A stretch of 64,000 bases of DNA from Ostrea edulis (taxonomy: Eukaryota). Where the stretch lies: contig NC_079172.1 of the NCBI RefSeq assembly GCF_947568905.1, forward strand, positions 71,238,001 through 71,302,000, in the 5' to 3' direction. A program made the translations under genes and the position numbers. Position 1 is the first letter of the stretch. Each line of letters opens with the position of its first letter. The notes beneath the pieces were generated by a model. The model did not search any database and had not been told where the DNA came from. It saw only the letters and a list, made by a program, of their open reading frames with translations. Of this stretch, positions 11,872 through 57,355 are shown piece after piece.

Positions 11872-13860
11872 GAATGACATCAATCTCATAGGCGAACTAA
11901 AATTTACGTTGGGATCAGGATGCCCGTTTGAAAGCTAGAGCTAGGAAAAATACACCCATGACCCAGAGGCGGATCCAGGATTTCCGAAAGGGGATATAGA
12001 ATACAAATAGAAAATTATACAAAATAATAGAAACTATACCAGGCAAATTGAATTATACAATATAAATTATGAAATATACAATATTAATGGAAATTTATAG
12101 AGAACAAATAAAATCACACGATACAACTGGAAAATACACCATGCATACAAAAGGGCAATTACACAGGATACAAATGGAAACGATCGAATATTTCAACGTT
12201 TCACCTACCGTACTGATACAATACAGCAAGTGTGAATAACAGATATGAACCCTGAAAATCAGAGGATGTTCATATTGATTGCTTGCTTTTAAATAATTCG
12301 CATACATCTCATTAGTCTTATCAAGAGATCAATGTAAGTTCTACTATTCTCTTCTACTTTCATACTTGCAATAATTTGTACACAATCTGTGTACGCCATT
12401 TAAGGAACAGACGTCTACATTGTTGATATTGAGATAGATCAATCGATCAATGTTTTATTTCTTGCAGTACAAAGTAAAACATTAAAAATGTTAGTACATA
12501 TTGTGTAATACAGACAAAACAATACAAATGGAAATCGTACGATATAGATATTGAATATAGAATACAAACGAAAAATTATATATTAAAAATAAACATACAC
12601 AATACGAATAAAAAAAATAGATAGTAAAATAGAATATAAATATAAAATTTAATTATAGAATACAAATAGTAAATATACTATACAAATTGACGATTAAAGA
12701 ATACAAATAAAAAAAATTTGTACAACACAAATTGTGAAAAATATTATGCAACACAAATTATTAAATATATGATAATATCCCGTGGGAAGTCTGGTTGTAA
12801 TAGGTCCTCAGTGGCCCTTGCTTGTCGTAAAAGGTGAATATATATATATAGGTCTGTACTTTAGTGAGATTGTAGGAAGCGAACATTGATATCCAGTCAC
12901 ACAATGTACACATGCATTCTTATTGTCAAACACACACGGTACAATTTCTTAGATATTAGTGACACGTGCTGATGTATCATGCTCAGTATCGGGACCCCCC
13001 CCCCCAACAAAATAGAAACAACAATCACAAATCGAGGGGGGGGGGAGGGGGGAGGGGGCATTCACATGTTGGGTACGTATCACTTCACGTCACATCATCC
13101 TGTACTTATTGTGCTTATGTTTAAAAACAAATGGATTTGTGGTGAGGTTTTTTCAATATATGCAATGTTTATGAATCTTACAATTCTTGTGTGACCTTTT
13201 CCTTGTGTATATTTAAATGACATTGTGATCGCTGTCATGTATATAATGCTGTGACACAGGTGGCGCTCCATAGATCTGTCACAAGTCCATTTTCTGCTCG
13301 ACCGATTTCCATTCCATCAATATGTATCTACCCAGATTTACGACAGATTCAGTGACTGCAGCTTAATGTTTACACTGTGTATCTGAGCAGGTATGTTTTA
13401 TGACGACTAGTAAATATATTTCAATTTAAAATCCCCGTCCAATGTTAATACAGATCTGACTAAAGAAATTAAATATTAGAAATGGTTTAGATTTAGATAC
13501 GTGCCGTATAAAATTTCAGGAAGAGGTCATAAGATAGTGATTTTCGACAACAGTTTCCACTTTGGCAGCAACAGTTACTGAGTAATAATTGATTGTGATG
13601 AAATATTGAATTTAAATTCAATAATTTGATTTTTTTTTCTACTTTCGTTTTAATAATAAACATGTACGTTGCAAGTGGAAGCTTGTTTTCTTCTTTCCTA
13701 TATTTGTTTTATTTATTTTTTTGGGATACAGTCTAAACACATTTACATGCACAGTCCTCTGTCTACTGGTAAAGTTAATAAACTTTGAGATATTCTGCTA
13801 AATCTAGAACGTTTTTTGTTTTTAAATTCTCATTATTTACGTGTTGTTTACAATCTACAG

Positions 13861-15518
13861 ATGTCCAGACGGGACATAAAGTTTGCCCAGCACTATGTGG
13901 AGTGTACACAGTGTGAGGCGAACGCTGAATATTACTGTAACACCTGTACTGACAACCTGTGTCAGGTATGCCGGGACCGTCACACCAAGAGCAACGCCAC
14001 CAGATCCCACGTCATCGTCCCCTACCAGGAGAGACCGACGACATCTCCAAACACCGAATCCTGTCACATCCATCCAGAATTATCTTATGACATGGCGTGT
14101 CAGGAATGCAAGCTTCCGGTCTGCTCTAGATGTATGAAGGAAAACCATAAAGATCACACATTCAGAAATATTGAGGGCACATTGAAAGACACCGAGAAAC
14201 CCTGCAGAGACAAGATTCAAAACGCGAAGAAGAATATCCTCCCAAAACTGCGCGACCGCTTAAAGAAATTATCTGATCAGAGAACAAAGTCCAAGGAGAA
14301 AAGAACTGACATAAGGAGACGACTGCGAGAAGATGCAAAACAGATTAAGGATTTAGTAGACACCATTCTCCAGGAGAAACTCGGAGATCTTGATATCAGC
14401 GACAAATCCCTGGATGAGGAATTCGAAAATCAAACAGCCATTATATCTCGTTTTATATCCAACTATGAAGATTTCATCGACGGGTTTGAAGATGAAGAAA
14501 AACGACCGTACGAGAAGCTAGCGCTGCGAAATGAAATACTCCAGTCTGAAGTTACAGAGCCTGAATTACCAAGCATAGAAAATCCTCAGTACCAACCAGA
14601 AATCATCAACAAGGACGGGGTCATGAAGCTGTTTGGAAAATTAAGTATGCCAAAGAGATCTACGTATGAAAAACAAAAACAAAAAATTTCAAAAAAACTT
14701 AACGTGTCAAGAAATATTTCTATCGGTTCTCCTGTAAAATGTCTGGAGTTCGATGTGCCCTCTAAAGATTTAGTCAGATTTCCTGTGTATCTGTAGACAA
14801 AGTTTGGGTTGGAGATAAAAAAGGCCAGATCATGCTCATGAACAAGACTGGAAATAAATTGGACGAGATTAAAACAGATTTGTCCTCTATATGGGGTTAT
14901 CACGCTGTGACTTACGATGGTGATTTGCTGTACATCGACGAATCAAACAACAGCATCAAGAAATACACATCAGACAGGAAGACCACAACTGTAATCATAA
15001 CCACGGGAGCCTGGACGCCCTGCAGTGTGTACTCCTCCCACAGTACCGGCGACATACTGGTGGGGATGATTAGTGTTGACGGGAGAGTGGTCCGATACAA
15101 CAAGGAGGGTCGTGAGCTGTGGCAGAGTCAGTACAACGCCCAGGGTCAGCGTCTTTATGGTTATCCTAACTATATAACAGAAAACGTGAACGGCGACATC
15201 TGCACGTCAAACGGTATCCTCAATAAAGGCGTGGTGGTGGTGGTGGACAGGGACGGAAATCACCGGTTCTCCTACAGAGGGCGTCAGGACGGATCAAAAT
15301 TCAATCCATTGGGAATCTGTACCGACGTCCACGGGCGGATCCTAGTGGTAGTCAATCTTGGCATCGTCCATATGATTGATCAGAACGGAGAGTTTATCAC
15401 CGTCCTACTGACCAGTGATCATGGAATATCTTGTAATTACGGACTGTGTACAGACAGGGACAATAATATCTGGCTTTGTGGACTCAACAGAGTCAAAATG
15501 TACAAGTATTTGAATTAG
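13861..15518 (+). CDS. RING-less TRIM-like protein (B-box, B-box, coiled coil, NHL/beta-propeller) with one frameshift near 14770 (pseudogene or assembly indel)
   Basis: B-box 1 CTQCEANAEYYCNTCTDNLCQVCRDRH..H; B-box 2 CHIHP....MACQECKLPVCSRCMKENHKDH; a helical K/E/L segment. The other frame continues SQISCVSVDKVWVGD into NHL-like repeats (YPNYITENVNGDIC, FNPLGICTDVHGRILV, YGLCTDRDNNIW). An acceptor (TCTACAG) directly precedes the ATG, and a candidate 5'-UTR donor is CAG|GTATGT at 13391. Confidence 0.88.
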
Positions 15519-22631: not shown

Positions 22632-22783
22632 TTAGACACAGTGACCAGATTCGGTGTTGATACACAGATTCTTTGTAGCACACACATAACCGTACGGTCT
22701 TCCCGTGACACACCACACGTAGTATGGACAGCCCATGGGGTGCTGCTCATAGTAGGTAGAGTTTTTATTGCTGCAGTAATCAC
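22632..22783 (-). CDS. Terminal exon: chitin-binding type-2 (CBM14/peritrophin-A-like) domain and stop
   Basis: (S)DYCSNKNSTYYEQHPMGCPYYVWCVTGRPYGYVCATKNLCINTESGHCV*; C-x14-C-x5-C-x9-C with HP..C..Y..C; acceptor TTCCATCAACAG. Confidence 0.8.
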
Positions 22784-25700
22784 CTGTTGATGGAATAAAA
22801 ACAAACACTTCAGGATTTCATGTTTCACAAATCTTCCGGGTAACTGGTTCATATGAATTTATTTACTTTCACTGTGTGTATCCTACTTAATTTCTGTTGA
22901 ATCCATTGTTTGTTATTTGCAATTATGATGGTATATTCTGTTTCAACCTAATTAGATCCGGTTTTAGTGCCGGTTGTCCGTGTGTGAATATAGGAGTTAT
23001 GAGATTGATCACTGTTCGTTATCTTCACCTTTCATATACATTCCATGAACTCCGCGACCTATTTCAAGGTATTGTTAAAATTGTTGGGAAATATTATTAT
23101 ATTTCCTGGTGTAGTTTTAACATTTTATTTTGATTTAGAATAATAGAGAATGCAAGTATTACCTATATTATGCAATGTTTATCTTATAAGTATTTCTCTT
23201 TATAATCGTCCAAATATGGAAATCATTACCAAATATGGAGACAAATCGATGTCAGGTGATTTCAGCTGTTACGTTTGAATAACTTACAGATCTCTATTTT
23301 ACATACATATACTTGAAAGTGTTTGAACTCTAAACACATTTTTTACAGTGTATTTATAGTAAAAAATAATACCCAAAATATAAATATAAATAACAAAATG
23401 TCCTTCTTTGGTTTGTCAAAGGTCGCAAACATTGCAGAAAAAAAATATTCCACAATCTGCTAACGCTGGTTATTATTTTTTCTGCATTGTTTCTTATCTT
23501 GACATCCCCTTTAACAAATCAAAGAAATCATTTATTATTTAGATAATTAGTTTAGATAATTAGTTTCATCATCCAATAAAATGCTATCATTACCGGTACA
23601 AATGTGCCAAAACCACCAGTATACGGTATCAGGCAGATCTATTAAATGAGACCATACTTACTTGGTACACTCGATATGGTATATTCTGTTGAACTTGGAA
23701 CAATATCTGTGCTGTTTAATGACTCTGGATTGAAGGCTACACATCTGACTGTTACGTTACTCCAACTATCCGCTGTGAGGTCTATTGAAAAATTCATCGT
23801 CTGAACATTGCTACAGTTCTTAGAAGACAAGGAGTACACCCTCTTCTGATTGGCTGGGTGATAATTCTTGAACTCCGTTTCACCGGGACGCTTTATTTGA
23901 ATTTCTAGTTCTCCAACCGGATGACCAACATCTCCTGTGCACGAATGCGTCCTTTGATTTTGCCCGTCTATCAGATCGGCATGAAGGGTGATTAGGGGCG
24001 GATTAGGTTTCACTTCAAAATTAAAAATAGAATAAGAATTCTAAAAATGTGTATGATATGAAATTAGTGTATGATAAGTACATTCAGTGTATAAATGATT
24101 TCAAATGAGACCTTGCATTATGAATCTGAATTCCAAGTTCAGAATTGAATTATCAAAGCTCATAAATATCAGAATTATGTATTCTAACCAAACTATATTC
24201 TAAAAGATCGTGTATCTACTCTGATATTTGATAATCAAAGTTACACGTAAAATGCGTTATGAAAAAGTGGTTAATATTTTCTAAAGATAAACGATGCACC
24301 TTTCATCACGATTGCAAAAGTTGTAGCAATGGTGTCTTCATTTTCAATCTCCATTACAACGGAATATTTCGCATCATCGCTACAAGACATTGAAGGAATA
24401 GACACATCCACACGTTGGGCTGAGAGGGAAAATGATACATGGAGTTTATCGGAGTACTCAGGTAAAACTGCTACAGTTCCGTCAGACCTGATGAATGCAA
24501 TGATGACCTGGTTTTTGGACACATTAAGAGAATGAAATGTTGATACATTGAGGTGGCAGCTGATACTGGCTAATTCATTCTGGTACACGGATGACGATGT
24601 ACACTCCACATCTGTAGAAGAAGAAGGAAGGGATTGAATGTAGTACCATATCAGACATGTAATTTACATATTCATCGATGAGAAGGAAGTCTTTGCTGAT
24701 GTTTTTAAAGTAATGGAGAACCCATTTTGTTAGTCTTTACATGAACATATCATAAACTCGCACAGTCTCTGTGGTTATGGTGTTTGCATCACGAAGTTAT
24801 AAATTCGAGCCCCGCTAGTGCTTTGAAAGCGTCAAATTTAAGATGTAAAAAATAGCTGTTTTTGAAACAAATTTAAAACATATCTTTATAAACTTGCATT
24901 TAATCTCGAATTGGGTATTTATGTATAGTTATTTAAAAGAAAACCCCACTTTTATTATTATTGCATGCCTTTTTCTATGTATTTAATGTTCTTTGTTTTA
25001 GTTTGTTTTTATTGTTTTACATGTAAAGCGCTTTAGGTCAATTGTCTTAATTAGATAAGTGATATAGAAATGTATTATAATAATAAATGATATTGATAAA
25101 AAATAGGCAGTGATTTCTCCTTCGGTAAATGGACGGAACTTAGAAGCTAGAGGGGTTTGAACCCTAAAACCACAGTTCCGGTGTCACAACAGGCGTTGAC
25201 ATCTTAGAAACTCTCACTTCTATGGTCCCCAGCGCTAAACATAGGTTTACAATTGTGGTAGAACAAACCCCTACTACCAACAAGCCCTTGATACTAGTTC
25301 ATGATTCCTTTGTGACTTGCTGATTTTCTTATTTATTGAGAACAACCCATTACATATGTACATATGGCTGCCTTTGTGAATTTTAAGAAGAAACCTCTTA
25401 CATTTGGCTGCTTTCGTTACTGTTGTGGACAATGTGGAGGTCGATGTTGTCGAAACTGAAGAAAATGAAAATCATCATCATCATCATTGCATTCAAAAAC
25501 CAGTTACATGTATATCATTGAGACCACTGATCCTGGCCTTAAACAATAGACAAATACATATACAAGATTTGATAAAACTACAGTAATTATGCAAGAAGGT
25601 GAATATTACCAAAAGTGATCAATTTCATAAATCGCAGAAAGTATAAATATTTAGAGTAAAGCAAACACGGACTCCTGAAAACACCAGAGGTGTGATCTGG

Positions 25701-28700
25701 TGCCTAGGAGGATTAAGTATTCCCTGATGACCAGTCACACAAGCCATGAGACCTCTATTTTGATCAGGTAAACGGAGTAATGCTTGGTCAAAATCAGAAT
25801 GTAATGAACAACAATTGATATAATAATTATTCTTTATATGATTGTTGGATATGCATTAAAAATATTTACAATGTAGTACTGTCATATATTGAGTTAAGGA
25901 ATGTTTATGCAATCGGTGTGTAAACGATGACTATTTCCTTCATGAAGCACAGTCCTATTATATTAATATTGAATTAATTGTTAGTCCTCGTACATGCTAG
26001 CAATATTTAACGTCAGTATCTCGCAAAGTCTATGATCCTTATAATGATCTAATTTGTAATTACAACCGTCATTAGGTCGAATGCTGTCTGACGTGTTCAT
26101 ACCAATTGTTAGTCCTCGTACAAGCAAGCAATATATAATTAACAAAGGTGAATAAAATCCGTAAACAAACAACAAATATATCGCAACTTTCCTCTGTGTC
26201 ACATCTTCTATATAGAATGAATGATAGTATCTAAAACGTATACGGTACCAACTCCGCGATAACAATAAACTTGTAGAAGCTATTTTAGGGAAAAACTTTT
26301 AGGGATATTCAGAGTGCTAAATAGTATATGACCCTTATATTGATATTATGTTTAGATTAGCAGAAGACACTTACTGGGGGTCGTTGGACTCTCTGTACAT
26401 ATTGCGCGGCTGCAGTCATCACAATACGCCTTCCCTATGTATACACATTGACGAACTGCGCATTTTCTTCCGTGAGGTTGGTTCTTCTCACACTGAATGT
26501 ATGTGTTGCAGTTATCGAATTTTTCATGATCAATGAAGAAAACCTTTGTTTCATTGAATTGTTCACATACATCAACTGGAATGTTTTATAAAGATATAAA
26601 AGTCGTTAAAAGAATGTGGATTTCATCCTGCAAAGTTTCACTAGAACATACATTCTAACAAAAACAAATACTTGTACATGTAATGAACTATATGTAGTTG
26701 GCTAAATCTCGTTGGAATATTTACTTTGTTTTGATAAATTATTCAAAGTAATGATTATTTACGTATTTAAATATCAAAACGAGTCGCCTGGTTATAAAAC
26801 TTGCTTTCCTATATTCAATTCTCGATCTTAGAGTGGCATTAAATACGCGATTCTGAACATAAGCAGTGACTGATCCTTCACCGAGTACTCAGTACTAAAT
26901 GTGAAAGCCACGGGTCTTTTGAATGAAAGGTGAAGATAACGAACAGTGATCCATCTCATAACTCCTATAAGCAATACAAAATAGAGAGCTCTGCACACAC
27001 GTACCCCTGGATACACCGGAGGTGGGATCAGATGCCAAGGAGGAGTAAGCATCCCCTGATGACTTGTAATATATATATATATATATATATTGTATAACTT
27101 TTAAAACAGAGATCCCGTATTACAGTGGGTGTTTGCAGGATAAAAAACTCTCCGTGACCTTGAACGCCAAGATTAATTCAAAGCTTGTGTCAATGGGTGA
27201 CCTTTCTATATGGAGTGGGGAAAAGATAAACTAGGTTAAAAACCCAAGATAAGAAAATCTAAATATCAGAGTTAATTGTAGCAAATAAGCCACAATTTTT
27301 ATAATTCTGAAAATCGCAGGATAATTTTCTCAAGTTTTATTATGCAATATAGTTCATCACAGTATCAACGTTTTTACTATCGTGAATCAAAATAATTCAA
27401 TCTCCATTCAAAAGGAACTGAAGTATAGGTATTGATCTAAACATTGCCATTCAGTAAAACACACTTATAGCGAAGTTTAAGCTGGATTCTGTATTCGTGT
27501 GTTCGCTTTAACAGTGTTTAACTGTAACTATAGAAAAGAGATTCGAATCCCGTATCATTTTATGGTGTAATATGCATTACCCAATTCTTTATACACTGTA
27601 CATATAGATATTTCGGTTCTCGATATGGTGACATACTTACTAATAAAATTTAAAAATTTCCTATCAACTTTATTCCACTGATGCTACTAAGGAGGTATTT
27701 TAGCACTGAATGGCGTTTGAACATGTCATTTTCGAATGTCACAATACCTTTTTGCGTGTAATTCAAATCTTAAATTAAGAAAATTAAAAGGTTTCTTGAT
27801 TTACAGGGACCCCCTTCTGCTTGTGATTCATAGTATGATAATGTTGAGGGTGAGGCCGTTAAACCAACACACATTGGTTTTAATGTTAATATCGGTTTGG
27901 TTTCATATGTTGCATAGAGAAATAAGGCTATTGAAGGGAAGGCCTAGATACTCTCTGAATAAGGATCATATAATCGAAACATTTGAAAATTACCTGGAAT
28001 CACATAAAGTGTTTCTTCCACCACACTTGACTGAACGGAAGCATCTTCTGTCTGAATCTCACACCTGATTTTACCTTCGTTCCATTCCCTCGATGCATTA
28101 AGGTAGAACTTCAGCGAATGAGTAGATGAGCAACTTTCCTGACGTGTTGTGTTCTCCTTTACCAGCAACATTAACCCATCAGCAAGAAGAACGCTATAGA
28201 GATATAGGGAAGAGGATACACTCGAATCGTAGACTTTCATGGCATCTGAAATCACTTTTTCGTTAAATATAGCGGTTTCTCCTGTGGTCGGATTAGATAT
28301 TGTAAGGGAGAGAAAGCCACTGACATCCGGGTATCCAACCTCTCCGGAGCAGGAGTGTTCTGAGGTGTAGTGGAATGTGTCCTCCACAACGTCGACATGT
28401 AGTGACAGAGAGACAGGGGTAGATCCAGCTTCAACTGTTTCAGAGACAAGGTACAAATTATCAGTAAACGTATTCCTCCTCCATTCCCTTATCTACAAAC
28501 TAACGGTAATATAAAAAAGGATCATCCCATGATCACCATTATCGCTTTGATTTGAACCAGTGACTCGAGGTATTTTACGGCGGAAAATATCACAATAGCC
28601 AGCGTCTTTTTACATTACGTATAAATTTATGCGCTATAGTGAGGGAGTTATAAAGATCTATTTACTTAAGAAAAATCATAAAACCAGACTAACCCTGAGT

Positions 28701-31700
28701 ATAACAGAGTATGAGAGTTCACGTATGAGAAATGATTGGGACGTATTGTGAGTCGCAATAAAGCGCGTTTATTTAGTTTAAGGAAAATGCACGAAATTTC
28801 CAAAGATGATATTATATTTGATAGAAATATGGATTTTCAATCTCCCTTGTACATCTTTGTCTAAACCAATCACATAACGCGGTGTATAGAATTATTATGT
28901 TACGGTGTAATCTATTATGTTCATTGACAATCTCTTCGTGGTCTGTGGTGATAGGTCTTCCAACAGTCTGTTGGAATTCCCATGGGCACGAATTGTGCTC
29001 CTTTGTTAGCTGACTTGTTTCTATATTCATATGAAGCAGAATTTATTCAAAAACTTATACGCGAGAAGAAAAAATATTTCGCTGTGACCTTCAATTCGAC
29101 ATTTAGATATATCGATGATGTTTTGTCTATTAACAACAATAGCATTCATTCATATGTCGATTTGATATATCCCTGTGAGCTCAAAATAAAGGACACTACA
29201 GAGTCGACCACTTTTGCTTCATAATTAGATATTTTATTGAAAGTAGACATTAACGTCAAACTGACAACTCAACTGTATGACAAACGGGATGATTTCAGTT
29301 TCTCCATCATCAACTTCCCATATTTATGTAGCAATATTCCATTATCACCTGCATGTGGCGTTTATATATCTTAACTGATTCGATATGCAAGAGCTTGTTC
29401 TGCGTATAATCAGTTTTTAAATCGAGGTAAGCTACATACAAACAAGTTGATGGTACAGGGGTTTCAACAGTCTCGATTGAAGTCAACATTTCGCAAATTC
29501 TATGGTCGTTATAACGATGTAGTTCGTCAATACAACCTCGCATTGGGTCAAATGCTGTCTGACGTGTTTCATACCGATTGTTAAGTCGTTCTTGGCACAC
29601 TGATTTTGACTGCGGATAACTCCGTTTACCTGAACAGGATATAGGGCTCACGGCGGGTGTGACCGGTCAACAGGGGATGCTTACTCCTCCTAGGCACCTG
29701 ATCCCACCTCTGGTGTGTCCAGGGATCCATGTTTGCCCAACTATCTATTTTGTATTGCTTATAGGAGTTACGAGATTGATCACTGTTCGTTATCTTCACC
29801 TTGCATAGGGATATGATTCATATCATTTTAATCTGAGGAAAACATTGCTGTACATCAATTTAGATTGGTATACCATGCTTTATACATTAAGGGATCGCCC
29901 AAGGGAAGAAACAGACTTACCTGTGGGTTGTAAGGTCAGGGGGAGAGGAGAGGCAATTACAGAACTTCCGGTCGTAACGGTACAGAAATATTGTCCTTCA
30001 TCACTACACTGTAGGTTAATGTATTCCACTTTTAACTCTCCATCCTCAAAGGTTACTGATCTTCCTGGACTATCGGTAAGTACTCCATTGGCATAGTTTG
30101 CTATGGTAGCGTTTGTGTTATTGGATATTTTGTAAATTGAAATAGAGTTTATTGCTGACGTCGCCACGCTCGTCTGACAATGAATACTAACACGCTCTCC
30201 AGGTTTAGCTGCCACATGATATTGTGTAAAAGATACATCTGAAATTAAATGGGAGACTTTAACTATAAAACAGATTCATGTTAATAGCAGAAGTATCTAC
30301 CTAAACAGAAGGAATAAACATTTTTGTCAAGTGTTTTTCTTCTTGATATTTAATAAAACGTTATATTTTTACCAAAAATCTGAGAAAGTAAAAGTATGCT
30401 CTATCCAATGTATGTTCCTTACCATTTGTACATTGTAACAATCATAGAAAATCTATTTTATTAAGAGTTCATAAATCTGGTAGAAGTAAATGAACCCGAA
30501 AGTCGAAAACGATCTATGGTTTATCACTAGAAACACTGTCAAGAAAATACAACTCAGCGCAATAAACTAGTGGCATAGAATATATACGTATACAATGCAA
30601 ATAGGCCCAATCCTGGGTAAACGTTTGCAAATTACAAAGAAAGTCAGTCTTCTTCTACGGTGAAAAGTCGTTACTTTATTACTAAAGAAGTAGACAGCAA
30701 TTTTGATTTCCATATCTCAAGTGATAATGATAAGACGTGCGGGAAATATACGTTCAACAATATCACACTGTGTTTGCTCTACTCTAATTTTGTATTCTTT
30801 TTGGGATTTATGAGATTGTATTGTTTTTTGGGATTTATGAGATTGATCACTGTTCGTTATCCTAGTTGTATCGTTTGAATGAATAAATCGCAACGACATC
30901 AATTGACATTTTATCATTAGGAAGCATGCGAGAAGTTTTCATATCAATATCTTATTTGTACTACATGGTACTATGCGCAGAAACAGACGAACAGAAACTC
31001 TAACGAATGGATGTAGAGGATATCTATAAACATTCCCTGGCTTTGTCTATAAATCAGGAGATTCTATGTTTTGCCATCAATGTAGTTTATTTTCCAAACT
31101 ATCACAAATCTACAATCGAAATACAACTTCAAACATTTCGGTTGAACGACACTGAAGAGACATTATTTGTCGAAATGCGCATCTGGTGCATCAAAATTTG
31201 TACCGTATAAGCTTTACATTTACATACCTGACTGCAACACAGTAACCACTTCCGATGCGACAGCAGTTTTATTCAGCAGTGTGTTTGATGCTATACAACG
31301 TATCACAGAACCATTCAAAGCTAGCTCCATGGGAAAACTAGTTTTATAGTTCCACTCAAAATCCACAGAGCAGTCACTATTTCTAGGTGACTCATACATG
31401 CTCCGCTTTGCGGGGTCTTGTAGCACGGAGCCGTCGGGTAGTCGGACTTCTAGGGAAATTTGGCCATATTCATAGTCGGTTGTCGTCCTGCAGGTCAGTT
31501 CCACTCTTTCACCGCTGTAATACGTTGTCTTCATATCCAGCGTTACGTTATTGATGGGCGCTGGAAAGTAAGTGATGGTGGCTTCGTTATCGTAGTACAC
31601 GGTAATGTCGATATTGTGTTGCCTTCCAGGTTTTAGATTTAATAACATGGTACTAAATAACAAATACGGAATACAAACTGACTTTTACTGAAAATGAATA

Positions 31701-32967
31701 TTTCAATAATATAGAACTTACCAGTGATCTCAGCGTCGCTTATCTTCATTATAACTGTTTCTGCAATGTCCGCCATTGTTATCCCGCATTTGAATCGTAA
31801 GAGTGACGGGCATATTACTGCTGTAGCTAACTTGACGTGAAATACAACTGTTATTCTGTCAGTATGTCGTGTAAAGGTTACACTTGTTAAATCACTCTTC
31901 GTAGGGTGTGATTCTGTGCCATTACTTGAGAGTAATGCGAGTACAGACGAACTTGTACCAAGTTCCCGGCTAGCAATTACTGTGTCCCAATTCTCCACCA
32001 CGTCAATTGTGCACTCTAACACCAAGTCCTCTCTAGCAAGGACCGTCACACTAGGGAATGATATGTCTGGAACATAGTATACAAGACTGAATATGTAGTT
32101 ATGACGCTGTATGACTGAATATATAAAAAGCAGATAATAAAGATGTGAGAGTAGACAGAGCAAAGGGAGAGAATGAAAGGAGGAGACAAGGGGAGGAGAC
32201 AAGAGGAGAAGACAAGGGGAGGAGACAAGGGGAAAAGACAGGGGGAGAAGACCAGGGGAGGAGACAAGAGGAGGAGACAAGGGGAGGAGACAAGGGGAGA
32301 AGACAAGGGGAGGAGACAAGGGGAGAAGACAAGGGGAGAAGACAAGGGGAGGAGACAAGGGGAGAAGACAAGGGGAGGAGACAATGGGAGGAGAGAAGGG
32401 GAGAAGACAAGGGGAGAAGACAAGGGGGGGAGACAAGGGGAGGAGACAAGGGGAGAAGACAAGGGGAGGAGACAAAGGGAGAAGACAAGGGGACGAGACA
32501 AGGGGACGAGACAAGGAAAGAAGAGAAGGGGAGGAGACAAGGGGACGAGACAAGGGGAGAAGACAAGGGGACGAGACAAGGAGAGAAGACAAGGGGACGA
32601 GACAAGGGGAGAAGACAAATGGAGGAGACAAGGGGAGGAGACAAGGGGGGAAGACAAGGGGAGGAGACAAGGGGAGAAGACAAGGGGAGGAGACAAGGGG
32701 GGGGGAGACAAGGGGAGGAGACAATGGGAGAAGACAAGGGGAGAAGACAAGGGGAGAAGACCAGGGGAGGAGACAAGGGGAGAAGACAAGAGGAGAAGAC
32801 AAGGGGAGAAGACAGGGGGAGAAGACAAGGGGACGAGACAAGGGGACGAGACAAGGGGAGAAGACAAGGGGAGAAGACGGGTAGAAATAGAATGAGGAGA
32901 GGAAAAGGAATCAATGAAAAAGGAGAGAGGAAAGAGAGAAAAAGGAGAAGGGGAGGGGAAAATAAGA

Positions 32968-33030
<63 letters not shown>

Positions 33031-36000
33031 CCTTCTATCTACCCCCAGATATACTTCGAAATAAATGTCATAGATATGGAGGTATGATAATAAAATATAA
33101 AAGATAACCAGAAGCTTTAAAGGTTAAGAAGTTGTATAACAGTAACAAAAGCTTTACATTATAGTTCATGTACATTTGATATGCAGCATACAGTATTATT
33201 TCCATTTACAGGTATTTATAAACTTGATGAACACTCACTGGCTGTGCTGATAGGAGCACCTGTTGTTGTCTCCGTAACCATTGTTGTAGTGCCAGGAGGT
33301 GTTTCTGATGTCAATGTCGAGTTGTCTGTTGTGTTCGTTGTTGACAATGCTATCTGTGTTGTTTGTATAATGTTTTCTGTTGTTGATCGTGATGTAGTAA
33401 CGTAAGACGACGATGAATCTAGATTTTCTGTTGTTGATTGTGACGTAGTGACTTTAGTAGACGATGAATCTAAATTTTCTGTTGTTGATTGTGGTGTAGT
33501 GACTTTAGTAGACGATGAATCTAGATTTTCTGTTGTTGATTGTGGTGTAGTGACTTTAGTAGACGATGAATCTAGATTTTCGGCTGTTGATTGTGGTGTA
33601 GTGACTTTAGTAGACGATGAATCTAGATTTTCTGTTGTTGATTTCGTTGTTGGTTCTACAGTGACGGAAGTAATTAATTCTTTTGTATTGTTTGACGTTT
33701 GAGTTGGTAGAGAGGTGTATGTTGTATTATCAGGGGTTGTTATTGATAAATTCTCCGTGGGCTTTTGAGTGGATGTTAATGTTGTATCTGTAAATTGTGT
33801 TAAGGTAGAAAATATTGAGAAAGGACTAGCAGATGATGTTTCTGTTGGAAGAGAAGACATAGTTGTTGTTTCTGTTCTACTAGCGGGGGATGTTGGTGAT
33901 GTTGTCAATGTTTCTAATGTAGTTGATTGGAACGCTCGAGTTGTTAATGGTGATGATGTTGTCAGTATATCTGTTGTAGATAGGGAAGTGGGCGATGTTT
34001 TTGGCATTGATGTCAGTGTTTTTGTCGTAGATGGGGAAGCTTGAGATGTTACTGTTGTCGATGTCAGTATTTCTGTTGTGGATAAAGTCGTTGGGAATGT
34101 TGTTGATGTTGTCACTGTTTCTGTTGTAGTTGTCGGTGGTGATGTGGTTGATGTTGATACAGATTGTGTTGTCGATGAAGTAGTTGATGTTGATGGTTTT
34201 CCTGTTGTAGTTGGTGTTGGTGATGTGGTAGATATTTTCAGTGTTTCTGTTGTAATTGGTGTTGGTGATGTGGTAGATATTTTCAGTGTTTCTGTTGTAG
34301 TTGGTGTTGGTAATTCTGTTTTAGTTGTCGATGAAGTGGTTGATGTTGATGGTGTTCCTATTGTAATTGGTGTTGGTGATGTGGAAGATATTTTCAGTGT
34401 TTCTGTTGTAATTGGTGTTGGTGATGTGGAAGATATTTTCAGTGTTTCTGTTGTAATTGGTGTTGGTGATGTGGTAGATATTTTCAGTGTTTCTGTTGTA
34501 ATTGGTGTTGGTGATGTGGTAGATATTTTCAGTGTTTCTGTTGTAGTTGGTGTTGATGTGGTTGGTGTTGAAACAGATTGTGCTGTATCTGGCGGTAGTG
34601 TTGAGGATGTTATAAGTGTTGTAGTAGTCAATGCGTCCTCTGTGGTAGTGCTTAATTCAGTTGTTATTTCTGCTTCTTTTGTTTCTGCAGCTGTAAGAAA
34701 TTCAGCTGAGCTTATTTATGTTTGGATAACTAAGTTCTTAGCGTAAGTGGATAACGAGAGTTGGTATAAATGAGTGAAAAAATTATTATATGAGATTTAG
34801 AATACAAAAAAATGTTATTTTATTATTATGATCTTATATATGACATCAATCAAACTTGCCACANNNNNNNNNNNNNNNNNNNNNNNNNNNNNNNNNNNNN
34901 NNNNNNNNNNNNNNNNNNNNNNNNNNNNNNNNNNNNNNNNNNNNNNNNNNNNNNNNNNNNNNNNNNNNNNNNNNNNNNNNNNNNNNNNNNNNNNNCATTT
35001 ATGTTAAGTTGTAAGCATGATATTATATGTATCGAAATGTATCGAAATATGCAGGCCATGTTGCATGATTCATATGTTGTAAACAAACACTATTAGATAT
35101 ATTTAAACTTTATAGATTGATCTACTGAAGAAATGGTGAACATGGCGTAACTGATGCTATGTAGGTGAAGATATATGTCAGTGATGATGATCAAATGAAA
35201 ACACTCGTCAAACGTTCAGGACGAATCTGACGTACAAATATTTCAGAATGCAGAGTATGTTATAATGTTGTTAACAAGACAGAACGAACGATTGCTGAAA
35301 ATGGTCATAGAAAAGTGATGTTTGATATTATAAAAGATAGAGTTGGGGAAATTAACTTGACTTAGTTTACAGTCAATGTTTAGTACGAGATCGACTTGCT
35401 GATACTCAGAGGCAGGAAATATAGCCAGCATACCTGTTCTTGTTGTACTCGATGATGAAGGTGTATTTTCTACAGAAGAAAATGTCATGTATGAAAAAAA
35501 GAAGGTAAAATGCATTAAGTAAGTTTGCATCCATTTATAAAGACAAATACATATGATAAGATTTCTTAAAATTTGTTTATAAAGAAAACAACTGAAGATG
35601 ATTTGGCCTCGCATATTATACCTAATAACCAAGACACAAGAACTTCTTCAAATGTTTTACATTTTCGTAGACAAAACATGTATAAGATTTATCACAATAA
35701 AATTAACAGATGCTCTATCGTATAAGATTACAAGCTGAGAACTGGATCTGAGGGGAGTCATAGTAACCACATCCAATACGATTATAAACCATACCTGTAG
35801 TCATAGATTGGTCTGCTGCTGAGGAAGTGGTACCAGCTGTTGTTAATGACGTGATCATGGTCCGAGCTGCTGTTGATGATAATGAAGTGGTTTGAACTGT
35901 TGAGGATAGTGGTAACGTGGACTGAACTGTCGATGAAAGAGTTGACGTTGTTTTAGTAGATGATGGTGTTGATGTAGTGTCAACTGTTCCTGATGATGTT

Positions 36001-49200: not shown

Positions 49201-51463
49201 ATATGTAAGGAAGTTGTCAGAAATTTAACCGAACTTAATTTTTGGTGCACAAAGAATGACAGACTATCAGGCACATAGCGTGGCTTTTCTATATAAAAAG
49301 GGGGGTGGGAGGCAGAGGAGAAGTCGTCTAAAATTCTTGACAATCTAGCAAAAAAGGGGGACCCCCCTAAAATATGTTGTCTATTCTAAACTAACAGCCC
49401 AATGGAGGGGTGGGTGCTTAGTCCTTTAATTCATTATTTACTGCAAAGTACATGTGGTGGGAGATATCATCCAATATGCCTTAGTTTGTATGTGAAAATA
49501 ACTTTGCACGTAAAAATCACGGAAAATAAATTTTATAAAAATTAGAAATGTCCCTTTTCTGGTTTAACGTGCCCGAGTATAAGATGGACGAAATCAAGGA
49601 TATCAAATGTGATTATCCAGTCAAACAACTTCTTGAAGACTTCGTCTCCCACAAAATTTATAAAGAGGAACACTTTAACAGAGATGGGATGCCCCTCATT
49701 GATTTTGGGAAAAACTTTTTCTACCACAGCATTCTTTCAACCTTTTGACAGGCTCTGTGAAGTGCAGTATCACATGACTTCTGCACTTTTAATATTACAT
49801 ACACATACGCATAGGCGCCCTCTGGTGATAACCCTACTAAGACCTGGTAATTTCTGATGTATCCCTGCTAAACAGTCCATAATTGTATATTAACAAATAA
49901 CGTTTTCAATTTTCATAAATATTTTTTCCCCCTAAAAAATTAGAACATTTATATCTGAACCATTTAGGCATGTTTTATTAGATATTCATCATGCACCAAA
50001 TCACAGCGAAATGTACACTCTGGAATCCTTTATTTCCAAGCAAAACATTTTTTTTATCATTCCGGGAAAAATCACCAAAAAAAAAAAAAATGATATAAAA
50101 TAATTGAGAGCTTGTTTCATTTTTTCGATGGTGAAATCATACTTCATAAGAGGTATTTTAACGAGCCATTAAATAAACTTTTAGTGTAATGAGCTCGAGC
50201 TACCTTAACCGGTGCAAAATATTTGTACACGGATTTTAGATTCATACATATTGAACGTAAGCCCTACATGTCTGTGCACATGCACAGCAAGAAATTATAT
50301 GCTTATTATTAGGCGTTGCTTCGTAACCTTACGAGTGTTGTGCGTTATAATACATGTGTAAATCAGATCATTTTCTGTGTGTAATGCGTACCGTTGATAC
50401 TGTGACACACGTTGATTAGTCTTTTTATATAAAAACAAATTCGAGATGCACATGCCTTGTCAATTTTGACGCATGTGCAATAGTCCAATCCTAAAGATGG
50501 GGAATTCTTTCGGTTCTCGGTAAAAATCGTGGATTTCCGTTGTCCTTGAACCATGTATGATCATACCGAAATTCGACAAACATGTAAACCTGACAATTGT
50601 TGACTTATAACGTGTAAGGGTTCAGCTATGTAAATACTAAGTCTACAAACGGAAATACTGTAGGGATGACCGCGTATAACTTAGGAAACAATGATGCATT
50701 TTTATAAAGAGAAATGTAAAATCAGAAATCAAACGATGACACAAATGAAGAGTACAACACTGAGGTATACATTTCTGAGAAACATAACTTACACTCCCTG
50801 AGTTACAAACATACATAGCTGAAGCTGAAAAATGAACACGGTTGCAAGTTTGGATTAACAAGTTTTTTTTAACACGATTACCCTCCATACTTTTCAAGGT
50901 GTAGTGAGCCACCCTAAATTTCTCAATGAATTAAAATTTGTAACCTAGTATAGAAGTGGTTTATAAGTCGGACTTTACATAGTCTACCTTTGAGTAATGA
51001 CAGAACATTAGGGCAGTTTGGATCGTTTGAAATGGACAAACAGATAAAAATGAACAAATTGTAGGAGACTGAATAAATCCAATAACACGATGATGCAATT
51101 TGTTTTAAATACATGTACATGTTTTGGCTATTCTTCAACAGCTTAATTGTGACATTTGTTATGGTAATTTGCAGAACTCCTTTGTTTCCCTTGGGTAAAC
51201 TTTTAACAAGACTGAGTCACGTTGTACTAAGCCACCTGAATTTTGTTGACTGTAAACGGTGGTTTGTCTGGAATACATAAATGTACAGTTGACTTAAAAT
51301 AATTGATAAAACGTATCTCGTGTAAGATTGTTATAGTTAGACAATTATTTCGTTAGGTTTCAGATTCATCAATAGACCTCGTGCTTCGGAGCAGCCGCTG
51401 GGGCATTCTTACCTGATCCATAGATACAGAGCTGGCCATAGACTTGGCATATTTTGATAGTTC
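22632..51463 (-). CDS. Multi-exon type II membrane protein: TM - SEA - Thr/Ser mucin stalk - IgV-IgC - IgV-IgC - CBM14-like - IgV-IgC - CBM14-like (at least 17 exons, about 1,826 aa; 5' end uncertain)
   Basis: 17 GT-AG exons with compatible phases total 5,481 nt (divisible by 3) and end in TAA at 22632-22634. Domain motifs are given in the exon entries. Confidence 0.82.
22975..23031 (+). mobile_element. Penelope-like element 3'-end fragment
   Basis: ATAGGAGTTATGAGATTGATCACTGTTCGTTATCTTCACCTT, as at the end of the 29803 copy. Confidence 0.7.
23662..24012 (-). CDS. Exon: Ig C/I-like domain 3
   Basis: VKPNPPLITL...HSCTGDVGHPVGELEI...NCSN...TVRCVAFN; 351 nt, phase 1-1, donor GTAAGT. Confidence 0.85.
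24300..24611 (-). CDS. Exon: Ig V-like domain 3 (F-strand Cys absent)
   Basis: VECTSSSVYQNELASISCHL...VDVSIPSMSCSDDAKYSV; 312 nt, phase 1-1. Confidence 0.8.
25402..25455 (-). CDS. Exon: short Thr/Ser linker
   Basis: STTSTSTLSTTVTKAAK; 54 nt; acceptor TTTTCTTCAG, donor GTAAGA. Confidence 0.75.
25596..25800 (-). mobile_element. Diverged Penelope-like 3'-end fragment
   Basis: AAACACGGAC.CCTG...CACCAGAGGTG.GATC.GGTGCCTAGGAGG, the reverse of the 29590-29803 region. Confidence 0.7.
26375..26575 (-). CDS. Exon: chitin-binding type-2-like domain with 8 Cys
   Basis: VDVCEQFNETKVFFIDHEKFDNCNTYIQCEKNQPHGRKCAVRQCVYIGKAYCDDCSRAICTESPTTP; 201 nt, phase 1-1, donor GTAAGT. Confidence 0.78.
26927..27062 (-). 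mobile_element. Penelope-like 3'-end fragment
   Basis: AAGGTGAAGATAACGAACAGTGATC...GGAGGAGTAAGCATCCCCTG. Confidence 0.8.
27994..28434 (-). CDS. Exon: Ig C/I-like domain 2 (with an internal insertion)
   Basis: HSCSGEVGYPD...ESCSSTHSLKF...WNEGKIRCEI; 441 nt, phase 1-1. Confidence 0.82.
28919..29803 (+). mobile_element. 5'-truncated, degenerate Penelope-like retroelement (RT core + thumb + 3' UTR; Naiad-type because no C-terminal endonuclease follows)
   Basis: Q..GIPMGTNCAPLLADLFLY, FRYIDDVL, SYLD, LYDKRDDFSF.IINFPYL.SNIP, GVYIS.LIRYARAC. One frameshift and two premature stops; the ORF ends at about 29583 with no GIY-YIG domain. Confidence 0.9.
29921..30238 (-). CDS. Exon: Ig V-like domain 2
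   Basis: GERVSIHCQ...LKVEYINLQCSDEGQYFCTV (D-x-G-x-Y-x-C); 318 nt, phase 1-1, donor GTAAGT. Confidence 0.88.
31152..31192 (+). ncRNA. Type I hammerhead ribozyme core (stem I degenerate), probably from a Penelope-type terminal repeat
   Basis: CUGAAGA, stem II GACA/UGUC (loop UUAUU), GAAA, stem III AUGCGC/GUGCAU (loop AUCUG), cleavage triplet AUC at 31190-31192. Confidence 0.6.
31228..31560 (-). CDS. Exon: Ig C/I-like domain 1
   Basis: GERVELTCR...SDCSVDFEW...LNGSVIRCIASN; 333 nt, phase 1-1, donor GTATGT. Confidence 0.87.
31722..32066 (-). CDS. Exon: Ig V-like domain 1
   Basis: EDLVLECTIDVVENWDTV...VICPSLLRFKCGI; 345 nt, phase 1-1, donor GTAAGT. Confidence 0.8.
32177..33026. repeat. Degenerate 13-bp purine-rich array (GGGGAG[A/G]AGACAA) followed by a purine tract and (GA)n at 32971-33026
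   Basis: Directly visible. It is intronic and produces spurious G/R/E/K-rich and P/L/S-rich ORFs. Confidence 0.93.
33239..34690 (-). CDS. Exon: Thr/Ser/Pro mucin-like region 2 (484 codons) with internal 15-aa and 17-aa repeats
   Basis: Open frame with repeats TTETLKISTTSPTPI and TTENLDSSSTKVTTPQS; acceptor TTCTTACAG, donor GTGAGT; phase 1-1. Confidence 0.85.
34864..34995. other. Assembly gap (132 N) inside an intron of the SEA-Ig-CBM gene
   Basis: Run of N. Confidence 1.
35434..35469 (-). CDS. Exon: 36-nt Ser/Thr linker
   Basis: ENTPSSSSTTRT; acceptor TTTTCTTCTGTAG, donor GTATGC; phase 1-1. Confidence 0.75.
35795..36852 (-). CDS. Exon: C-terminal half of the SEA domain and Thr-rich mucin region 1
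   Basis: (R)SGSIIVTFMLYF... followed by T/S-rich sequence; 1058 nt, phase 2-1; acceptor CTTTTCAG, donor GTATGG. Confidence 0.87.
37851..38062 (+). mobile_element. Penelope-like 3'-end fragment
   Basis: Near-identical to 29591-29803. Confidence 0.88.
38230..38300 (-). CDS. Exon: middle of the SEA domain
   Basis: MEKTFKRSNSYGSNYQFCEVKNL(R); 71 nt, phase 0-2; links the flanking SEA exons in frame. Confidence 0.8.
38646..38907 (+). mobile_element. SINE (Meta-SINE-like), head missing
   Basis: TGTCGTAAGAGGCGACTAAA...GTGTGGCACAATAAAGATCCCT...GGTGACGTCTCCATATGAG.GAAAAATTCTCGAG, then a CAAT tail. Confidence 0.8.
38990..39490 (+). mobile_element. Older, degenerate Penelope-like RT/3'-UTR fragment
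   Basis: TATGACAAAGGGGATGACTTTAGCTTC (YDK.DDFSF), continuing to GAGATTGATCACTGTTCGTTATC. Confidence 0.8.
40247..40284. repeat. Poly(G) tract of 38 nt
   Basis: Directly visible. Confidence 0.9.
40460..40680 (-). mobile_element. Penelope-like 3'-end fragment (a further partial copy at about 40790-40885)
   Basis: GAAGATAAC.AACAGTGATCAATCTCATAAC...CCGCCGTGAGCCCTATAT. Confidence 0.8.
40959..41062 (-). CDS. Exon: N-terminal part of the SEA domain
   Basis: (Y)TSEITLTIKQDYTATLGNKNSQEYRELTSQLCSQ matches the SEA pattern L.I...Y...L.N..S.EY..L; 104 nt, phase 1-0. Confidence 0.85.
41561..41578 (-). CDS. 18-nt microexon (DSKIRY) between the TM and SEA exons
   Basis: Acceptor TTTTTTTCTGTTTACAG, donor GTAAGT; phase 1-1. 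Confidence 0.7.
41690..43660. repeat. About 23-bp minisatellite array (about 2 kb, EcoRI site in most units), degenerating at the right end
   Basis: Unit TT[G/T]ACCGAGGGAC[G/A]AGGAATTCA; intronic. Confidence 0.95.
43742..43925 (-). CDS. Exon: cytoplasmic tail and type II signal anchor
   Basis: FYTFIDTQSYKNPDGFSS...KNTRRSRLIKISVFWMVVLMLALIIFIIYISNYR: a basic cluster followed by about 21 hydrophobic residues; 184 nt, phase 0-1. Confidence 0.75.
44014..44140 (-). mobile_element. Penelope-like 3'-end fragment (a + strand copy follows at about 44445-44521)
   Basis: AAGGTGAAGATAA...GGGCAAACACG.ACCC.TGGACACACCAGAGGTGGG. Confidence 0.78.
44952..46260 (+). mobile_element. Degenerate, internally deleted DIRS/Ngaro-like tyrosine-recombinase retrotransposon remnant (gag-like ORF1 and SGNH-hydrolase fragment)
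   Basis: CDDIGSHVPLKLTQKIWEG/FIDLSVL, IEKWTSAFMIYMSI, W.KYDDQFRLR (gag-like; frameshift at about 45285, stop at 45530). LFRTDGTHL/VLGNQLFLNNI (SGNH-like) at about 46090-46250. No RT, RNase H or YR seen. Confidence 0.7.
47418..50204. mobile_element. Kolobok-like non-autonomous element with TTAA flanks, carrying a 46-bp satellite
   Basis: TTAA|GGTAGCTC at 47414-47425 and GAGCTACC|TTAA at 50197-50208. RR...YY termini with a TTAA target are Kolobok hallmarks. Confidence 0.6.
48091..48921. repeat. 46-bp minisatellite, about 18 units
   Basis: Unit GAGAAATCAATGTGCTACACGG[G/A]CAGAACACAAGCGGTATTCTC[A/G]C; period 46 (48181, 48227). Confidence 0.97.
50506..50913 (-). mobile_element. Inverted partial copy of the left part of the 47418 Kolobok-like element
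   Basis: 50506-50888 is the reverse complement of 47709-48092 with scattered differences. It ends in GTGTAGTGAGCCACC|CTAA, similar to the 47418 terminus. Confidence 0.75.
51413..51463 (-). CDS. Most upstream exon found for the SEA-Ig-CBM gene (ELSKYAKSMASSVSMDQ)
   Basis: Strong acceptor (TTTTCACTTCCCACAACCAG) and donor (CAG|GTAAGA); phase 0-0, in frame with the TM exon; contains in-frame ATGs. Confidence 0.55.
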
Positions 51464-57223: not shown

Positions 57224-57355
57224 NNNNNNNNNNNNNNNNNNNNNNNNNNNNNNNNNNNNNNNNNNNNNNNNNNNNNNNNNNNNNNNNNNNNNNNNNNNNN
57301 NNNNNNNNNNNNNNNNNNNNNNNNNNNNNNNNNNNNNNNNNNNNNNNNNNNNNNN
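57224..57355. other. Assembly gap (132 N)
   Basis: Run of N. Confidence 1.

Follow-up and report, generated by a model that had tools for sequence, protein, structure and literature searches.

Fusions of immunoglobulin (Ig) domains with chitin-binding domains are treated as a protochordate speciality, the VCBPs, and molluscan Ig-lectin fusions as a speciality of snails, the FREPs, CREPs and GREPs. In reviews up to 2026, VCBPs are described only for protochordates and FREPs for molluscs, and FREP, CREP and GREP are reported to be restricted to Heterobranchia (PMC8878817). Here we describe a gene on the minus strand of a 64,000-nucleotide (nt) stretch of the oyster Ostrea edulis (assembly GCF_947568905.1, contig NC_079172.1, positions 71,238,001 to 71,302,000), which we call the window and number from 1. 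The predicted protein consists, in order, of a short tail, a signal anchor, an SEA domain encoded by three exons, a Thr/Ser stalk of 767 amino acids (aa), and a head with the domain order V1-C1-V2-C2-CBM14-linker-V3-C3-CBM14, where V and C are variable-type and constant-type Ig domains. The preliminary description of this stretch had tentatively taken the combination to be undescribed, but it is not unique to the locus. The gene is one member of an existing, unstudied bivalve-wide family that is already present in RefSeq and UniProt, and it is new only as a combination of known modules.

How does the oyster protein compare with the described systems? As in the VCBPs, its V-type Ig domains are joined to a peritrophin-type chitin-binding module at the C-terminus, and by analogy a role at chitin-bearing mucosal surfaces is plausible. 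However, VCBPs are small, secreted proteins of the protochordate lineage, with a tandem pair of V domains at the N-terminus and a single chitin-binding domain, whereas the oyster protein is from a protostome and has V-C pairs, two CBM14 modules, a stalk, an SEA domain and a membrane anchor. No special affinity of the V profile to VCBP structures was seen among its 60 best matches in the PDB. The bivalve family resembles the VCBPs, gut immune proteins of sea squirts and amphioxus, but is unrelated to them. The VIgLs (FREP, CREP and GREP) also join molluscan Ig domains to a carbohydrate-binding module, but they are secreted, and their lectin part is a fibrinogen, C-type lectin or galectin domain, none of which occurs in the oyster exons or open reading frames (ORFs). 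The name VCBP/VIgL-like, which had been given to the protein, is therefore useful as an analogy, but the protein misses defining features of both groups, namely the domain order, the secretion and the lectin type.

The membrane-bound portion of the protein has other counterparts. The SEA mucins, MUC1 and MUC3/12/13/17, have a Thr/Ser/Pro tandem-repeat stalk and a membrane-proximal SEA domain with the sequence G|S[VI][VI]V, and a Mytilus homologue of the oyster protein has been named automatically as 'mucin-3B-like'. These mucins are of type I, their tail being C-terminal and their mucin region distal, whereas the oyster protein is predicted to be type II, with the transmembrane (TM) segment before the SEA domain and the stalk capped by the Ig/CBM14 head. 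The type II transmembrane serine proteases (enteropeptidase, matriptase and HAT) have the same N-terminal tail, signal anchor and SEA domain, but they carry a protease domain, and Pfam and family hidden Markov model (HMM) scans found none in the oyster exons or ORFs. The ectodomains of the B7/CD80 type also have a V domain followed by a constant-type domain, and there are profile matches to the B7-H3 IgC domain and to the CD80-like C2-set_2 family; this likeness is at the level of fold and profile only, with no orthology implied. The true homologues are bivalve V-C-CBM14 proteins, including those of Mytilus coruscus (CAC5391878.1, P0055 in our numbering), Saccostrea (XP_062618597/8, P0060/P0037), Ylistrum (XP_060075028.1, P0015) and Pecten (XP_033759722.1, P0009). 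They share the V, C and CBM families and the TM-SEA-mucin tether, except P0009, which is secreted and has no tether. However, the identity is about 24-32%, the Mytilus orthologue-like genes have seven TSP1 repeats, and the number of units and the lengths of stalk and tail vary.

The pieces of the gene were located by stop-to-stop translation of positions 22,000-52,500, acceptor and donor sites were scored, and phases were checked. The translation contains an ORF with Met near 51,439, a stretch of hydrophobic residues, pieces that resemble SEA, a pair of long Thr/Ser ORFs and six ORFs of the size of Ig domains, together with a short Ser/Thr ORF and two six-cysteine ORFs, the last of which is closed by TAA. 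Fifteen exons join in frame to give 5,379 nt and 1,792 aa, ending with the TAA stop codon at 22634-22632, and each of the 14 introns has GT-AG ends. Exons 6 (the second mucin exon) to 14 (C3) are all phase 1-1, so each of these could be skipped or duplicated without a break in the frame. All of the parts that the preliminary description had named are present on the minus strand where it had placed them, and its in-frame joining up to the stop holds. Its count of 17 exons and 5,481 nt was not reproduced, and our model also differs at the 5' end; the difference of two exons and 102 nt probably lies in the cytoplasmic tail.

The N-terminal part is encoded by a putative exon 1 (51413-51439) and by exon 2 (43742-43901). 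The former has an ATG at 51439 that opens nine codons, MASSVSMDQ, and a donor, CAG|GTAAGA, in phase 0; it is weakly supported and without homology support. Exon 2, which ends in phase 1, contains the basic cluster NTRRSRLIK followed by the signal-anchor TM segment, SVFWMVVLMLALIIFIIYISNY, a hydrophobic segment of about 23 residues with five positive residues ahead of it and an acidic far side. By the positive-inside rule, the N-terminus would be cytoplasmic. There is no ATG in exon 2 ahead of the membrane segment, so an upstream exon is needed. The model, whose 5' end is uncertain, has an internal signal anchor and no N-terminal signal peptide. The homologues P0015, P0037/P0060, P0020, P0055, P0073 and P0076 also have a basic cluster, a TM segment and an SEA domain in this order.

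The SEA domain is split over exons 3, 4 and 5. Exon 3 (40959-41062), which encodes its first part, EITLTIKQDYTATLGNKNSQEYRELTSQLCSQ, alone gives 19.3 bits with Pfam SEA (PF01390; E 0.0012, cut-off 26.4) and matches the SEA domain of Mytilus P0014 in tblastn with E 1.9e-4. The middle of the domain, MEKTFKRSNSYGSNYQFCEVKNL, is encoded by exon 4 (38230-38300; phase 0 to 2), a 71-nt exon found by splice-site enumeration. When this exon and the acceptor at 36852 are included, the score of the spliced domain against an HMM made from the SEA domains of homologues alone increases from 33.4 to 60.1 bits, and the alignment is gapless; the best of 2,000 shuffles reached 9. This result bears out the two SEA exons that had been proposed. 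The SEA domains of three homologues exceed the Pfam cut-off (40.4, 31.5 and 28.3 bits), and the family alignment has the pattern C.E[MI] ... YYGC.V..L..GSI.V. The GSI is kept in every homologue, and the oyster protein has GSIIV. The self-cleavage site of SEA domains is G|S[VI][VI]V; GSIIV matches it and is thus a predicted cleavage site. Two other solutions for this region were dropped. A 14-exon model of 5,412 nt, with exon 3 joined to the acceptor at 36956, gives the SEA domain only 33.4 bits, compared with 60.1, and a candidate SEA exon at 40013-39922 (TTPYFIAFHSEIKLKANGVLISF...) has a poor acceptor and would duplicate the GS strand.

Exon 5 (35795-36852) encodes the end of the SEA domain with GSIIV and then the first part of the mucin stalk, with tandem repeats of 30/60 nt, and ends in phase 1. 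The second part is encoded by exon 6 (33239-34690; phase 1-1, with an alternative acceptor at 34684), which contains 45-nt and 51-nt tandem repeats. The 767 residues of the stalk are 36% Thr, 20% Ser and 8% Pro. The stalk composition, the SEA profile and the positive residues before the TM segment bear out the proposed layout of type II anchor, SEA domain and mucin stalk. The introns in this half of the gene are also repetitive. Between exon 6 and V1 there is a 13-nt minisatellite of 53.7 copies (32179-32878) and a (GA)28 microsatellite (32971-33026), and these yield spurious ORFs of 270-400 aa on both strands. Tandem repeats in introns 1 and 2 (42208-43540 and 48047-48954) give long plus-strand ORFs (TEGRGIHLPRDEEFIDRG..., SMCYTGRTQAVFSREINVLHGQNTSGILT...) and are probably non-coding satellites.

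For the Ig domains, Pfam was run on single exons, and HMMs built from the relatives were used thereafter. With Pfam, only V2 (exon 9, 29921-30238) passes, with 31.1 bits for V-set (cut-off 26), while V1, C1, V3 and C3 give no match. The family HMMs give 30.9 bits for V1 (exon 7, 31722-32066), a divergent V-type domain; 46.8 bits for C1 (exon 8, 31228-31560); 47.0 bits for V2; and 62.7 bits for V3 (exon 13, 24300-24611). C2 (exon 10, 27994-28434) is a constant-type domain with an insertion of about 30 aa; it matches the family C HMM in two halves, and Pfam C2-set_2 with 15.6 bits (cut-off 21). C3 is encoded by exon 14 (23662-24012). A scan of both strands of the window, with 1,994 ORFs in all, found exactly three V, three C and two CBM domains and one split SEA domain, and the window holds a single member of the family. 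In a PDB profile search, the V profile matches the V domains of antibodies, nanobodies, JAML and pIgR, to E 1e-13, and the C profile matches only the B7-H3 IgC domain, with E 8e-5. In the relatives, Pfam detects V-set domains, and the domain aligned to C3 matches the CD80-like C2-set_2 family with scores of up to 62 bits. An AlphaFold2 model of C3 (predicted local distance difference test score, pLDDT, 80.8) gave Foldseek matches to the MHC class II beta2 and B7-H3 IgC domains with TM-scores of 0.5-0.6. The three V and three C domains of the preliminary description are confirmed by these profiles and by the C3 model, and for V2 by Pfam. Reading the Ig domains as V-C pairs appears right on the basis of profiles and model, but we would not press the assignment of the constant domains to the C1-set or the C2-set on this evidence.

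The oyster protein has the family-specific constant-domain motif, C.G.VG.P.G.L, with three conserved Cys, in V-C-(CBM) units. The constant domain of the family has three invariant Cys rather than two (C24, C66 and C90 in C3 numbering). In the V domains of the family, an extra Cys that is nearly invariant lies eight residues ahead of the canonical F-strand Cys (L.C.D.G.Y.C). V3 of the oyster protein keeps the extra Cys only, without the canonical one, and this pattern suggests a shifted intradomain disulfide.

The first CBM14-like module is encoded by exon 11 (26375-26575), which is followed by exon 12 (25402-25455), encoding an 18-aa Ser/Thr linker that has strong splice sites and is without homology support. 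The second module and the stop codon are in exon 15 (22632-22783). The Pfam CBM_14 profile (PF01607) gives 11.1 bits (E 0.47) for exon 11 and 17-18 bits (E 0.003-0.006) for exon 15, while the homologous modules of the relatives score 25-82 bits. Exon 11 gives 31.8 bits with the family CBM HMM, and its six Cys align. These six Cys are kept across an alignment of 38 modules, two from the oyster and 36 from the family; 32 of the 38 match Pfam CBM_14. A family profile including both oyster exons matches solved CBM14 structures, with Aplysia EHEP (8in3) at E 2.7e-21, squid beak chitin-binding protein 3 (7bwe) at E 6e-9, and also Avr4 and the CBMs of insect and human chitinases. AlphaFold2 modelled the C-terminal module, with the family alignment, with a pLDDT of 90.6. 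The first Foldseek match to this model is the CBM14 domain of CHIT1 (TM-score 0.73-0.77, root-mean-square deviation 1.7-1.8), followed by Avr4, Der p 23, EHEP, Blo t 12 and tachycitin. In an exhaustive structure alignment with 48,161 chains, the top eight are all CBM14 (Z 5.8-3.4 over all 49 residues), and the next, an unrelated chain, has Z 2.9. From the profiles and the model, we regard the CBM14 fold of the module as settled. The CBM14 domains of the preliminary description thus stand by fold, six-Cys pattern and family profile and, for the second module, by the AlphaFold2 model, but both exons miss the Pfam gathering score.

In an exhaustive phmmer search, the C3 exon, the only query, gave 44 matches among 1.84 billion representatives. 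Such a small number indicates a small and specific family. All of the named matches with V/C/CBM architecture are from bivalves (oyster, mussel, scallop, clam and unionid), with the genera Saccostrea, Mytilus (five species), Ylistrum, Pecten, Mizuhopecten, Tegillarca, Mercenaria, Mya, Mactra, Potamilus and Sinanodonta. Among the weakest matches there are a few bacterial ones, which look spurious. When Mytilus P0055 was used as the query of a word-based protein search, only Mytilus proteins were retrieved. With the local family HMMs, the domain grammar of the family is (V-C-[CBM])n, and the oyster order, SEA, V, C, V, C, CBM, V, C, CBM, is that of Mytilus P0055/P0007/P0073 and of the secreted Pecten P0009. 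The ectodomain is colinear with Pecten P0009 and Mytilus P0055 over about 700 aa. An orthologue is present in Saccostrea, where V3, C3 and CBM exons lie in the same order on one contig (L001), with 45% identity for V3, 62% for C3 and 69% for the second CBM14 module. The Saccostrea fragment XP_062602631.1 is 60% identical over the end of V3, C3 and CBM14, and both of its junctions are identical to those of the oyster gene. The first CBM and linker exons were not found on the Saccostrea contig, which ends about 2.3 kb upstream of V3.

Fused models, with tail, TM segment, SEA domain, mucin stalk and V-C-CBM units, are found among the RefSeq and GenBank predictions as P0076, P0073, P0055, P0037/P0060, P0015 and P0020, from Mytilus (four species), Saccostrea (LOC134280195), Ylistrum and Sinanodonta. 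These models are themselves predictions, but were made independently. The Mytilus trossulus 'mucin-3B-like' protein (P0076) has 2,393 aa, with a TM segment at 301-319, an SEA domain, a 740-aa stalk and four V-C-CBM units. TSP1 repeats are added in further models from M. trossulus, M. edulis and M. coruscus; the family HMMs found no TSP1 exon among the ORFs of the oyster window. Secreted forms with a signal peptide, such as Pecten P0009, coexist with tethered forms in the family. Adjacent locus tags or shared contigs in Potamilus, Sinanodonta and Mytilus (P0005/P0012/P0033, P0011/P0018, P0055/P0010 and P0056/P0057) point to tandem clusters of family genes. The relatives are labelled 'uncharacterized', 'Chitin-binding type-2 domain-containing' or 'mucin-3B-like' in RefSeq and UniProt. 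The search of bivalves for the same architecture, suggested in the preliminary description, thus gave fused homologues, none of them characterised. The statement there that the combination had not been described agrees with the literature that we could search: we found no paper on the family and no description of Ig and CBM14 proteins in bivalves, in a search that reached few subscription journals.

An assembly gap (N) at 34864-34995 lies between the two mucin exons, within an apparent intron of 1,104 nt from the exon 5 donor at 35795 to the exon 6 acceptor at 34690. The frame of exon 5, when read onward, meets a stop after 26 codons, and there are three in-frame stops between the gap and the exon 6 acceptor. 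The frame is therefore independent of the gap, and exons 5 and 6 join phase 1 to phase 1 at any gap length. There is a second gap upstream of the gene, at 57224-57355, which could matter if there are 5' exons beyond 51.5 kb. Run searches found the locus in four sequencing runs, none of them recorded as RNA. Contigs of these runs placed on 22632-28500 cover introns as well as exons, so they are genomic DNA. Differences between individuals in these low-depth contigs are a small sample. Of 12 exon variants, eight are synonymous and four conservative (N>T, V>I, V>L and V>L). In V3, four of five single-nucleotide polymorphisms (SNPs) are synonymous, and the intron just past the V3 donor has seven SNPs and indels in 40 nt. 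This pattern fits real, constrained coding exons in the modelled frames. Apparent read joints were dropped as splice evidence, since they are artefacts of a very high-copy repeat at about 22,990-23,035 and 26,920-27,040. This element resembles a short interspersed element or a miniature inverted-repeat transposable element, occurs also at 37919-38125, 40415-40663 and 44008-44136, has a summed contig depth of 1e5-1e6, and translates to ...GMLTPPRHLIPP..GVRVCPTLYFVL.IGVMRLITVRYLHL.

What might such a protein do? The reading that we favour, with moderate confidence, is an apical, chitin-binding and sheddable type II SEA-mucin with a V-C/CBM14 head, similar in function to a VCBP. The N-terminal tail and the signal anchor are predicted to fix the protein in the membrane so that its C-terminus is outside the cell and its SEA domain adjoins the membrane. 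It would be located in the apical epithelial glycocalyx, where an O-glycosylated stalk would keep the Ig/CBM14 head far from the membrane. The CBM14 modules may bind chitin, either in the animal's own scaffolds or in chitin-bearing particles and microbes, and the V domains, the fastest-diverging part, may supply a second recognition surface. If the SEA domain cleaves itself at G|SIIV, the ectodomain would remain attached by non-covalent contacts, and pulling forces or proteases could then shed it. In function, the protein would correspond to a VCBP tethered to the membrane, and shuffling of phase 1-1 exons would have produced it independently.

Several points weigh against this reading of the protein, some of them on the side of the gene model. 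Exon 1 is weakly supported, a guess that rests on an ATG and a good donor. The N-terminal tails of the homologues are 115-300 aa long and not conserved, so 5' exons may be missing from the model; a search for further ones by homology to these tails and by splice-site enumeration gave nothing convincing. The gap between the mucin exons could hide an exon, or could reflect a mis-join or scaffolding error. The run searches found the locus in no RNA run, all four runs that contain it being genomic DNA. With this, with a minisatellite and the gap in the same part of the locus, and with secreted members such as Pecten P0009 that have their own signal peptide, one could suppose that the model is a chimera of two genes lying head to tail, with exons 1-6 belonging to a membrane SEA-mucin and exons 7-15 to a secreted V-C-CBM protein, each with its own transcript. 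We consider this very unlikely. The fused layout recurs in Mytilus (four species), Saccostrea, Ylistrum and Sinanodonta, so that a single gene is likely; the phases agree (1 to 1); and before V1 there is no ATG or signal-peptide exon to be seen, only ORFs that are translations of the minisatellite. The predicted exons very probably form one transcription unit.

The other points concern function. Both CBM exons of the oyster protein are under the Pfam CBM_14 cut-off of 22.1, and Aplysia EHEP, the solved structure that the family profile matches best, was deposited under the name of a 25 kDa polyphenol-binding protein, so the CBM14 fold does not prove chitin binding. The spacing between the fourth and fifth Cys is also short. 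The modules could thus have the CBM14 fold but a ligand other than chitin, such as algal polyphenols or another glycan, and the protein could be a general epithelial mucin or adhesion receptor. We think this unlikely, because chitin binding is proven for the other solved matches (squid beak CBP-3, Avr4 with chitin hexasaccharide, CHIT1 CBM14, tachycitin and Der p 23), and the family-typical aromatic residues are retained. If chitin is the ligand, the protein could instead be a structural anchor that fastens self-made chitin matrix, in the organic layer of the shell, the periostracum, the gastric shield or the gill rods, to the epithelium that secretes it, with the Ig pairs acting as spacers or in self-association. 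Bivalves use chitin to build their hard parts, and a membrane tether with a long stalk suits anchoring. Within-species variation, which in this small sample looks conservative and not hypervariable, is a further point for an anchor and against recognition, and Ig-domain and chitin-binding proteins have been reported among shell-matrix and shell-repair transcripts (PMC8382897). However, V diverges the fastest between the oyster genera (V3 45%, C3 62%, CBM 69%) and the family genes lie in apparent tandem clusters, both of which are more typical of recognition families, and we regard the structural anchor as rather unlikely. A recognition role for the tethered, chitin-binding protein is favoured by this fast divergence and clustering, and by the occurrence of secreted and tethered forms together.

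A wider proposal is possible but doubtful: that the bivalve Ig(V-C)-CBM14 family evolved independently of chordates, with secreted and sheddable forms, as an immune or recognition interface at chitin-containing mucosa, and so is a protostome counterpart of the VCBPs, with the role that the FREP-type VIgLs have in snails. In Mytilus gill, the toxin-responsive genes are enriched in CBM_14 (nine genes), I-set (nine), Ig_2 (eight), Ig_3 (seven) and V-set (seven) domains (PMC6215123). These similar counts could reflect the V-C-CBM14 family, although this is a weak lead. A conserved multi-gene family of this kind, with some members on a sheddable mucin stalk, would show that the pairing of Ig and chitin-binding domains arose more than once. 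It would also provide candidates for epithelial chitin handling in shellfish, whether of self-made matrix, food particles or microbes. The gene illustrates the shuffling of phase 1-1 exons of Ig, CBM14, mucin and SEA modules and, in mussels, of TSP1. All of these points are based on prediction and amount to a well-founded lead rather than a result.

Other features were seen in the window. A plus-strand reverse-transcriptase fragment (FRYIDDVL) at 28982-29224 lies in the V2-C2 intron of the Ig-CBM14 gene. An intronless ORF of 322 aa on the minus strand, at 3535-4503, resembles a rhodopsin-type receptor with seven transmembrane segments. On the plus strand, at 13816-15518, two adjacent ORFs of 326 and 228 aa have B-box-like Cys/His motifs and a coiled coil, and then an NHL-like beta-propeller part; this pair looks TRIM-NHL-like, a kind of gene that is expanded in bivalves.

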